A stretch of 64,000 bases of DNA from assembly GCA_964252035.1 (NCBI GenBank), contig OZ176201.1; one strand, given 5' to 3'. The notes below the pieces were generated by a model, which was not told the DNA's origin, made no database searches, and worked only from the letters and a program-made list of their open reading frames with translations. This DNA is from Podarcis erhardii. Its lineage: Eukaryota. The translations under genes were made by a program, and so were the position numbers. Shown here one piece after another: positions 37,615-40,600 of the stretch; within the stretch, counting starts at the first letter, position 1; each line of letters opens with the position of its first letter.

Positions 37615-40600
37615 TTAGGAGGAAGTGCTAGGATCCTGGGCACTGACAGGTTTGGGGGTTGGACTTTTTACTTTGCCCTTAGCAGCTTCAAGCTGCTTGC
37701 CATGGATGCGGTTGATGAAGGAGAAATAATCATCCATGGGTGCAATGGGAACGACTGATATATCTGAAGCGGCACCTTCTGGTAAAGCCAAGTCCTTGCT
37801 CTCCTGTTGAAGCAAAGAGAAAAGTCAGTTTCATCCCAGATTCTTCTTTCATGTCTTCATTCGGCATCTAATCTCATCCATGACCCTGATAGCCTAAGAC
37901 TGGCCTGCATGAACATAGATTATACCTTCCTGTACATTCAAATCCCGACTGCAGCAGCTTTGTGCAGTAAACAACCTTGAGTTCCCCATCAGAACCACCA
38001 TTATCACCATCCACCCTTTTCTGTCACTCGTATAGTCCACATTACTATACCAACAGCTCTGAGCACTGGGTAGAATCTCAAGGTCTTCTGTCCTCCTAAG
38101 GGCAGGCAACTCTGGTCTATTAAGTCACATCACTTCCAAACCGTCTGGAAAAGATGCGTCAGTTGTGAAAGGGACACATCTATTGAAAGACGTTTTGGGC
38201 ACCCTGGTGGTTATCACCAATTGAAGCTTCGTTACTCAAACCGCTAGGTATAAAAAGGGGACATGGCCTACATATAGAGATTACTGAGAGATTAAGAAGG
38301 AAAATAGAAATTAAAAGATTATGAGGAAATTAAAGACCATTTTCAGAGTTGGCTGCATTACAGACAAATACATGAGATGTACAAGGAAGATAATAAGAAA
38401 GGGTTTAGCTATACAAGTTATAGAAGAAGAAGTAAAGCTGCTGAAGAAAGCATATAGCATTCTGCTAGAATGGGAAACAAAAGATGAAGAGGTCAAATCA
38501 GTTATGATCAAATGGGCACAAGATATAGGACACAATATATAGTTCGAGGACTGGGAAAAGCTGCGGAAGGTAGATTTGAAATTTACTGACTGTTCTCTGC
38601 TGAAAGAAAACTATATGAAAATGATGTATAGATGGTATATTACACCAGTACAAATAGCAAACATGTATAAAACAGGGTCAAATATATGTTGGAAATGTAA
38701 AGAAAAAGAAGGTACTTTCTATCGTATGTGGTGGGAATGTAGAGAAGTTAAAATTTTTTGGGAAATGATATACAGTGGTGCCTCGCAAGACGAAATTAAT
38801 CCGTTCCGTGAGGCTCTTCGTATAGCGGTTTTTTCGTCTTGCGAAGCAAGCCCATTGACAGCTTAGCGGATTAGCGCTATTAGCGGTTTAGCGGCTTTTA
38901 GCGGATCAGCTGATAAGCGGCTTTTAGCGGATCAGCTGATAAGCGGCTTAGGGCTTAGGAAAAGGGGGGGTGAAGGGAAAAAACCCCGCAGGAACTCGCA
39001 AGACATTTTCGTCTTGCGAAGCAAGCCCATAGGGAAATTCGTTTTGCGAAGCGCCTCCAAAACGGAAAACCCTTTCGTCTAGTGGGTTTTCCGTCTTGCG
39101 AGGCGTTCGTCTTGCGGGGCACCACTGTATAATGAATTGAAAAAAATGTTTAAAATGACATTTGTAAAAAAACCAGAAGCATTTTTGTTAGGCATTGTAG
39201 GACAAGACCTGCCAAGAAAAATAAAAAATATATTTATGTATGCTACAACAGCGGCAAGAGTTTTGCTAGCACAAAGATGGAGGATGAGGAAATCCCAACA
39301 AAAGAACAGTGGCAAGAAAAATTGATGAGCTATGCTGAACTGGCCAAGCTGACATATAAACTGCGTGACAAGGACAACCATGACTTCAAGGAAGAATGGG
39401 AACTTTTCACAAATTACTTAAAAAGACAACAAAATGATTTGGACTCCTTGGCAGCTTTTGAATAAACATCCACAAATTTATTTGTTGAACATATTATAGA
39501 TAAGGCAATGGTATGTACAATTTTACAATATGCAGAGGATAATATGTGTAAAGAAACCAGAGAGAGGAACTGAGGGAAGTCCTTGGGGGGGGGGAGGGGA
39601 GGGGATAAACAACAGGGGAAAATATAAATGGATATATTGATTGATAAGCTGGTTTTGTGTGTGTGTGTGTGTGTGTGTGTGTATGTTTTGGGGATTCAAG
39701 TTTAGGTGAGATGGATGACAACATTTGTTATTACACGGAAAGCAGAAGATAAAAACTTAGCCTGTACTTTTAAGTACTATTTCCATAGCTAGGTTCCTTA
39801 CCAGTGTTGCTCAGTTTCCACAGGCCTTCATTTCCTGCATCCCTCCCTCTCAGAGTCCACACATAAACGCAGATTACAAATTTCATTTCTTCCTCTGCCT
39901 AAGTGCTGCTCTTTCAACCACACATACAGCATACATGAGCACACACAACCTATTCAGAAAAGACTCCATGGGTAAAGTGCTTGCCATTCCTCCAACCTAC
40001 CAAATCCAATTTTTCACAACCCAAAATGCAACAGGACCACCCAACTGGCTCTTGCGGGCACTGTGGGGGCCCTGGGCACCAGGTTGGCAATCCCTGCCAT
40101 ATGGGTACAGTGTTGTTGATGAAAGGTTTCAGTGTGCCTCTGGCCAGATCTGTATATCCTTCAAGTTTCAAGGGTCTGGAACTGTTTGTGTTTCAGGGAA
40201 GAATGGCCTGAGGGGATCAGCAACAAGGTTACTTTAAAGATTTAATGATGTGCACTCTTTCAGTTTTGAAGGAGTTATTCATAGTTTGCAAATACGGAGT
40301 CTGATACTGAAGTGGGATGCAGGGCTTAGGCGTTAGCACAGTGTGAAGAAGGAAGATGAATTATGGTGCAGCCAAAGAACTTAGAAGCACTGTGGTTCCT
40401 ATTACTGTTGTCAGCCAGTATCTTGTCTACTGTCCAGGGAATCAAGGTGTCGTACACTTCAGAGGCAGATCTGGATGAGTTGCTACACATTCTCATCCCA
40501 ACCTCAAATTGCCTGGCTGTAGTGGTAAAATTTGCCCTTTTCCGGTAATAATTACCTCTTCATTTCTGTGCCATGGGAGTGTGGAGATCAGCACTTTCAA

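Follow-up and report, generated by a model that had tools for sequence, protein, structure and literature searches.

Positions 37615-37803 on the minus strand of the 64,000-nucleotide (nt) stretch of Podarcis erhardii DNA analysed here (contig OZ176201.1, referred to as the window in the rest of the text) are, as judged by comparison with orthologous loci, a genuine distal alternative last coding exon of lacertid PCP2 (L7). The exon would extend a protein built around two GoLoco motifs by a C-terminal tail with a short, strongly conserved motif of its own. Few markers of Purkinje cells and bipolar cells are used more than PCP2/L7, yet what it does physiologically is poorly understood and, to our knowledge, it has been studied almost solely in mammals.

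The identity of the gene follows from its products and its surroundings. The peptides of exons 2 and 3 are true GoLoco motifs, both scoring above the Pfam PF02188 cut-off of 25.1 bits (scores in Table 1), and the tail of exon 3 is identical to that of the Podarcis muralis PCP2 model. Over its whole length, the window can be aligned with the PCP2 locus of Lacerta agilis at about 90% identity. In that locus a Sec1-domain gene (STXBP2), PCP2 and Pet100 follow one another, with PET100 convergent (tail to tail) with PCP2, and the order STXBP2-PCP2-PET100 is the same in Elgaria and Ophiophagus. A location between STXBP2 and PET100 is that of the PCP2 (L7) orthologue, as is the predicted in-frame join of the distal exon to the exon coding for GoLoco motif 2, at which the orthologues read ...ASGATK/E... 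(a slash marks the splice junction).

The splice signals on both sides of this predicted junction are compatible. Exon 3 ends in ...ACC AAG/gtgaga (49057/49056), a phase-0 donor, and the acceptor of the distal exon (37803) is also in phase 0, the implied intron being 11,253 nt long. At this acceptor the minus strand reads ...gaaactgacttttctctttgcttcaacag/GAGAGCAAG...; the region 37830-37804 consists of aaCTGAC-ttttctctttgcttcaaCAG, after which the frame is open. An earlier reading of the window made from its letters alone (the sequence-only reading) had proposed a phase-0 acceptor opening a 62-codon exon, to be joined to exon 3 from a distance of about 11.2 kb. We could confirm that 37615-37803 translates to exactly the residues quoted in that reading, followed by TAA, and that the frames match, with orthologue models sharing the predicted junction. 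Beyond the stop codon, a block at 37374-37467, just upstream of a candidate ATTAAA polyadenylation signal, is conserved with Elgaria.

The exon peptide was searched against 1.84 billion representative proteins, the exons of the window being searched singly and database orthologues serving as full-length proxies in place of a spliced window protein. This search matched residues 148-209 of PCP2 isoform X3 of Hemicordylus capensis (209 residues) at 76% identity, a protein whose junction reads ...ASGATK/QENKDLALPE. Further matches were a 60-residue open reading frame from a gecko-like Logan contig, PCP2 of Pelodiscus sinensis and a 1,162-residue cod protein. Two other matches, of 1,769 and 3,346 residues with 9 and 23 repeated stretches, were judged spurious, the former being a repetitive Cys-, Gly/Asn/Ser-rich protein. 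A word search with the Hemicordylus protein then returned 234 PCP2 proteins, which were scanned for the motif. It was found in Hemicordylus, Elgaria, Anolis sagrei, Sphaerodactylus, Pogona and Rhineura among the lizards, and also in Pelodiscus, Platysternon, Alligator, two newts and more than ten frogs. In the motif-bearing PCP2 models the tail is always preceded by the invariant Lys of exon 3 and has an acidic first residue; many fishes and no fewer than ten other tetrapod genera have database models in which the distal exon is joined at K/[DE]. The window exon shares this junction and the motif core with the long PCP2 isoforms of Hemicordylus (X3), Elgaria multicarinata, Anolis sagrei (X1), Pelodiscus sinensis (X1) and Bufo bufo; its identity to Elgaria is 79%, compared to the 76% for Hemicordylus. 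When a word search was confined to the exon-4 segment of Hemicordylus PCP2, 3 proteins turned up among 14 candidates, a result with little bearing on the lacertid annotation, and a search for contigs encoding four of the database proteins, Podarcis muralis PCP2 among them, found none.

At the DNA level we compared the loci of Lacerta agilis, Elgaria, Anolis sagrei, Sphaerodactylus and the gecko-like Logan contig. Branch point, pyrimidine tract, CAG acceptor, frame and the ...DPSTSS-stop ending are kept in every one of them, and six squamates share a conserved acceptor and branch point with the architecture ctgac...tttgcttcaacag/GA. The distal exon of Lacerta agilis is intact, with 61 of 62 residues identical, and lies outside the annotated coding sequence; between the window and Lacerta the exon is 98.9% identical, compared to 90.7% and 94.0% for the flanks. 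Pairwise ratios of nonsynonymous to synonymous substitution rates (dN/dS) of the exon range from 0.11 to 0.37 among squamates, changes are in excess at third codon positions (5/4/18 against Elgaria), and the Elgaria exon carries a single in-frame deletion of four codons. The codon-position pattern and the in-frame indel suggest that the distal exon is coding sequence. The sequence-only reading had named frame conservation in relatives and dN/dS as checks of its proposal; the frame proved to be kept across squamates, and the dN/dS values place the exon far above chance.

A chance open reading frame behind a chance acceptor, or conserved non-coding DNA such as the 3′ region of PET100, would fit the absence of the distal exon from the lacertid annotations seen, and PET100 does end about 1.2 kb away on the opposite strand. 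We nevertheless consider such an origin extremely improbable in view of the K/[DE] boundary shared by database models from many fishes and ten or more other tetrapod genera, of the codon-position pattern and in-frame indel, and of the comparison beyond the lacertids, where the exon aligns with Anolis and Sphaerodactylus and its flanks do not. Synonymous changes within the core likewise argue against constraint acting on DNA or RNA instead of on protein. The distal exon is already present in database models of several relatives and, as an exon, is ordinary.

The sequence-only reading overlooked a proximal terminal exon (Lys plus stop, 45632) that is an alternative to the distal one and lies 7.8 kb from it. 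Use of this exon gives a short protein ending in ...ASGATKK, and AATAAA signals are found downstream of its start, at 45483 and 45232. The proximal acceptor together with AAATGA is conserved in Lacerta, Elgaria, Anolis sagrei, Sphaerodactylus and Ophiophagus (king cobra). Many squamate, turtle and newt PCP2 models end in ...KK, and the short form is sometimes the second isoform of a gene with the long form as well, as in Pleurodeles (X2 and X3). From these comparisons, the choice between a short and a long C-terminus is a conserved property of non-mammalian tetrapod PCP2.

Mouse pcp2 offers a parallel. A 58-bp exon 3B located in intron 3 carries a stop codon and gives rise to a short pcp2 devoid of the exon-4 tail (Barski et al. 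2014, PMC3939015), and the long protein binds Gαi more avidly than the short form (PMC3939015). As with the lizard proximal exon, a stop exon in intron 3 thus yields a short protein lacking the tail of the last exon. Mammals also share the junction after the Lys of exon 3, followed by an acidic residue (K/DG in mammals, K/ES in the window). In contrast, the mammalian exon-4 tail lacks the DDYF helix and has predicted phosphorylation sites.

Several side observations concern the 3′ part of the gene. About 160 nt past the proximal stop are conserved as far as gecko (76-81%), in the window to about 45430, suggesting either a functional 3′ untranslated region or, in analogy to exon 3B of the mouse, a cassette exon. 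At 30 nt into the proximal exon there is a possible donor, AAG/GTGGCA. Within the intron that separates the GoLoco-2 exon from the proximal last exon lies a run of N, at about 45,920-46,085. Read-through of the exon-3 donor (...TKVR...) was seen in some lizard and turtle products, including a 943-nt Logan contig; these products could come from intron retention, as a third type of 3′ end, or be artefacts of the models. Read-through past this donor in the window would stop after 21 more codons, at 48994.

The motif core follows the consensus [DE]DYF[ST][FL]I.[RKQ][IV]H..[QH]L, in which D, Y/C, F, I and H are essentially invariant in alignments running from cod and frogs to lizards. A word search with the C-terminal part of a cod protein returned 27 teleost proteins, mostly annotated as 'uncharacterized' and containing 3-10 GoLoco repeats. 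The teleost tails inspected end in ISP[DE][DE][DN][YC]FSLI[EQ][KR][VI]H.[AT][QH]LQ, and the last GoLoco motif ahead of them belongs, as it does in tetrapods, to the motif-2 type of PCP2 (...RRLDDQR.TLPSLPGF). Members of this family (Gadus macrocephalus XP_059893026, Perca, Thunnus, Myxocyprinus) thus resemble the tetrapod proteins in having PCP2-type repeats and the C-terminal motif; they differ in their 3-10 GoLoco repeats, their length of 400-1,200 residues and a Lys/Gly-rich extension past the motif. They look like expanded PCP2 orthologues. Since teleost proteins share the C-terminal motif, it is, on this comparative evidence, older than the split between ray-finned fishes and tetrapods. 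Some of these teleost proteins are misnamed in databases ('sialidase', 'cyclin-dependent kinase 12'). The core of Carettochelys insculpta PCP2, TDNYCSLVNLSHGRHLDS, is visibly relaxed, which may reflect decay in a single lineage or a sequence error.

In mammals and snakes, the motif was not seen in the sequences covered. None of the approximately 50 mammalian PCP2 proteins scanned contains DDYF; their tail reads instead ...PQDPxALSFRRNSSPQPQTQAP, and global hhalign comparison of this tail with the lizard exon sets PQDPxALSF against PTDDYFSF with a probability of 9%. Likewise, the DDYF tail occurs in 0 of 12 snake PCP2 models. In king cobra (Ophiophagus hannah, 24956-26807 of the fetched locus) no trace of the distal exon was found in the 1.85 kb, free of N, that extend from the proximal exon to PET100. 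A cobra stretch reading NCFFSFISR was considered as a relic of the exon and rejected, its DNA alignment being no better than that of shuffles. These sequences suggest a loss of the long isoform in snakes.

We then asked what the motif resembles. It conforms to the pattern of the helix half of GoLoco, [DE]-x-[FL]-[FLM]-x-[LM]-[LIV]. With the motifs of PF02188 (PCP2 motifs 1-2, RGS12/14, GPSM1-3) it has in common the acidic residue, the aromatic-hydrophobic pair and [LFM][IL], followed by a hydrophobic residue 3-4 places on and then by x-x-[basic or polar]-[LM]-[DEQ]; it stands in the GoLoco register, occurs in GoLoco-repeat proteins and is predicted to be helical. It differs in lacking the [DE]-Q-R triad, and hence the arginine finger for guanosine diphosphate (GDP). 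The score of an ungapped profile-profile comparison was positive at one offset only and was matched by 6 of 5000 and 139 of 20000 column permutations. Alignment of the motif with GoLoco by hhalign gave P = 0.002 and a probability of 14%; with broader alignments these values became P = 0.0005 and 31%, and the score was reached by 1 of 300 column-shuffled controls. A position-specific scoring matrix (PSSM) of the 16 helix columns yielded +7.6 bits compared to −28 ± 8 for shuffles, and scores at least as high were found by chance at 5 of 197,000 six-frame positions (window plus loci), corresponding to about 0.001 expected per 62-residue exon. Four tests agree on one register, with p values of about 0.001-0.007. 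Certain true repeats are themselves similar: some cod GoLoco repeats read ...MMNHVHRERMDDQR, so that N-x-V-H exists in true repeats, and FFAMMNHVHRERMDDQR, the reading of some genuine cod repeats, is close to the frog motif YFSFINQVHSRHLEK.

Structure prediction with AlphaFold2 (Hemicordylus protein plus 21 orthologues) returned a largely disordered chain with a mean predicted local distance difference test score (pLDDT) of 55 and three helices only. Two of these belong to the GoLoco motifs (residues 54-66 and 99-110) and the third, longer than either, to the C-terminal motif (173-190). The third helix has the highest pLDDT of the protein (70, 85 and 75 in blocks of 10 residues).

We propose that exon 3 would be joined either to the proximal exon (AAA TGA, 45632), giving the short ...TKK protein, or to the distal exon, giving 62 additional residues with the motif core, and that the distal join would thereby add an 18-residue predicted amphipathic helix to PCP2. 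The full account, comprising the alternative distal exon, an ancient helix, its descent from GoLoco and its docking on Gα, we regard as on balance probable, and its parts carry different weights. The chances seem to us evenly poised that the helix descends from an ancestral GoLoco repeat whose triad was lost before bony fishes and tetrapods separated; descent is rated as high as this because GoLoco repeats are all that the host proteins are otherwise made of. Docking of the helix on Gαi/o-GDP, in the groove between switch II and α3 and in the manner of the GoLoco helix, is a tentative proposal that we put at distinctly lower likelihood. Gαi/o-GDP would be the most economical target because Gαi/o is the only known partner of PCP2; it is further favoured because the motif matches the part of GoLoco that fills the switch II/α3 groove and because the mouse long form binds Gαi better than the short one. 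The RGS14-Gαi1 structure, reportedly solved by Kimple et al. in 2002, is said to show the GoLoco helix between switch II and helix α3. Without an arginine finger, the docked helix alone would not inhibit GDP release, and the long isoform would bind Gα more avidly or differently than the short isoform. It is rather unlikely, in our estimation, that a triad-less GoLoco descendant has been retained specifically as a docking helix for Gαi/o-GDP devoid of guanine nucleotide dissociation inhibitor activity, working as a two-site/three-site or tethered switch. If such a docking helix did exist, it would represent an ancestral regulatory mode replaced in mammals by a phosphorylatable tail and lost in snakes.

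A number of results weigh against this account. Pfam GoLoco (PF02188) at E≤10 gave no match for the window exon peptide and was silent for eight orthologous tails (frog, newt, alligator, turtle, anole, cod). A custom GoLoco hidden Markov model (HMM) built from fetched repeats gave −2 to +2 bits, did not list the window peptide among its matches and scored lizard sequences no higher than shuffles. The motif profile retrieved no GoLoco chain among 177,635 PDB sequences. The 7.6 bits of the helix half are far under the 37-42 bits of true motifs and within the range of the best chance matches, and the hhalign probability is just 14-31%. Moreover, column shuffles destroy amphipathic periodicity, so that they may be outscored by any amphipathic helix with an acidic cap. 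The predicted third helix continues where GoLoco turns into the extended segment of the triad. As for the exon itself, the lacertid models seen (Lacerta agilis X1, Podarcis muralis X1) annotate the short ...TKK form only.

Fixed-register scoring and residue comparison bear on GoLoco membership more directly. Over its full length, the window motif scored −14 bits with a fixed-register PSSM, compared to at least 53 bits for true GoLoco repeats. The window motif has A-A-K at the place of [DE]-Q-R, and the column of the conserved Gln is occupied in the motif by an invariant His; His is found at this column in some true cod repeats as well (NHVHRERMDDQR), so that this residue alone does not exclude membership. 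A QR triad was found in the motif in 0 of about 60 orthologous tails, whereas R, Q and R are invariant in the true GoLoco repeats of the motif-bearing proteins. Judged on residues and profile scores, the motif is not a GoLoco motif by the criteria of the family.

Other assignments of the motif were tried and rejected. The sole match of its profile in PDB, 3-dehydroquinate dehydratase, was spurious, and a feature search of the ESM Atlas returned phage families with low recognition, a result that is meaningless here. The GBA motif has the core consensus psi-T-psi-x-[D/E]-F-psi (PMC4760084); no register of the window motif or of the orthologous variants combines T at position 2 with [DE]-F-psi.

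The helix could alternatively be an independent short helix or linear motif that binds a partner other than Gα or folds back on the GoLoco repeats of its own chain, for instance an acidic-flanked aromatic-x-x-aliphatic docking site (F-S-F-I after D-D), its likeness to GoLoco being convergence between acidic-capped amphipathic helices. The absence of GoLoco similarity at the HMM level, the low hhalign probability of 14-31% and a predicted helix exceeding the length of a GoLoco helix would all be expected from such a motif, as would a sharp consensus of its own, with an invariant His and neither triad nor Gln, that has been stable since before fishes and tetrapods diverged. Convergence fits less well with four tests settling on one register (p about 0.001-0.007), with host proteins that otherwise consist only of GoLoco repeats, with true cod repeats of the N-x-V-H variant and with a mouse exon-4 tail that already affects Gα binding. 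We view an independent motif as a serious possibility, though not a likely one.

The sequence-only reading had instead interpreted the exon as a degenerate third GoLoco repeat of a lizard PCP2, either vestigial or binding Gαi/o without inhibiting nucleotide exchange, based on a gap-free alignment with motifs 1 and 2 in which A-A-K takes the place of the triad. The second of these alternatives, binding without inhibition, remains a plausible proposal. Both observations were sound: hhalign and the ungapped profile comparison independently chose the same register, and A-A-K is present in the window. The proposed echo between the PM preceding the motif and the PEM ahead of motif 2 dissolved into species noise, most orthologues having PT, PV, PG, SG or PD there, and the window peptide failed the comparison of HMM scores with shuffles that the reading had set for itself. 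Of its GoLoco-like third unit, the likeness of the helix half survived and membership of the GoLoco family did not, given the results for Pfam, HMM, PSSM, triad and Gln. Nor is the motif specific to lizards, being found in frogs, newts, turtles, alligator, many lizards and teleosts, or vestigial, given the near-complete invariance of D, Y/C, F, I and H and the triads kept by the true repeats. Decay is also contradicted by purifying selection (dN/dS 0.11-0.37), by a core that is invariant from cod to lizards with the triad absent in all orthologues, and by the motif being the best-predicted structural element of the protein. We therefore hold a decaying repeat to be very improbable.

Table 1. 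Features of PCP2 in the window. A slash marks a splice junction.
Feature	Position	Strand	Basis or remark
PCP2 exon with GoLoco motif 1	50801..50924	(-)	ttgcag/TCG ... AAGA/gtgagt; Pfam GoLoco 39.1 bits
PCP2 exon with GoLoco motif 2	49057..49220	(-)	Pfam GoLoco 43.9 bits; ends ...ASGATK
Start of proximal alternative last exon, ttcttctttgcag/AAA TGA (Lys + stop)	45627..45632	(-)	Annotated coding sequence of Lacerta agilis ends at the orthologous position
Branch point aaCTGAC, polypyrimidine tract and CAG acceptor of distal exon	37804..37830	(-)	Window letters
Distal alternative last coding exon of PCP2	37615..37803	(-)	62 codons + TAA
Invariant core of C-terminal motif, 11 residues	37702..37734	(-)	Five squamates, synonymous changes only
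Predicted amphipathic alpha-helix, Y26-G43 of exon peptide	37675..37728	(-)	Homology with Hemicordylus helix 173-190
Candidate polyadenylation signal ATTAAA	37256..37261	(-)	About 355 nt past distal stop; pattern scan only

Besides these features, the introns of PCP2 in the window contain two copies resembling short interspersed elements derived from transfer RNA (tRNA), at about 49400-49670 on the minus strand and 41680-41950 on the plus strand. The two copies share translations that look like open reading frames, and one has a tRNA-like head (...ggattcgaaccgccgaccttccgatcggcaag...).

A literature search retrieved no paper describing the motif, its depth of conservation, its absence in mammals or a third motif in non-mammalian PCP2, and the motif strings occur in none of the papers searched. 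For annotation, our results mean that the lacertid PCP2 models seen here are without a conserved coding exon. For the family, they suggest that ancestral PCP2 carried a strongly conserved C-terminal helix beside its GoLoco repeats. This helix has been kept behind a choice of two last exons in fishes, amphibians, turtles, crocodilians and lizards; mammals are without it and snakes appear to have lost it. A helix that binds Gα without an arginine finger would amount to a natural, "binding-only" half-GoLoco. Such a Gα-binding helix would explain the effect of the last-exon tail on Gα binding even in mouse. If the helix binds something else, PCP2 would be implied to have a further, unidentified partner.

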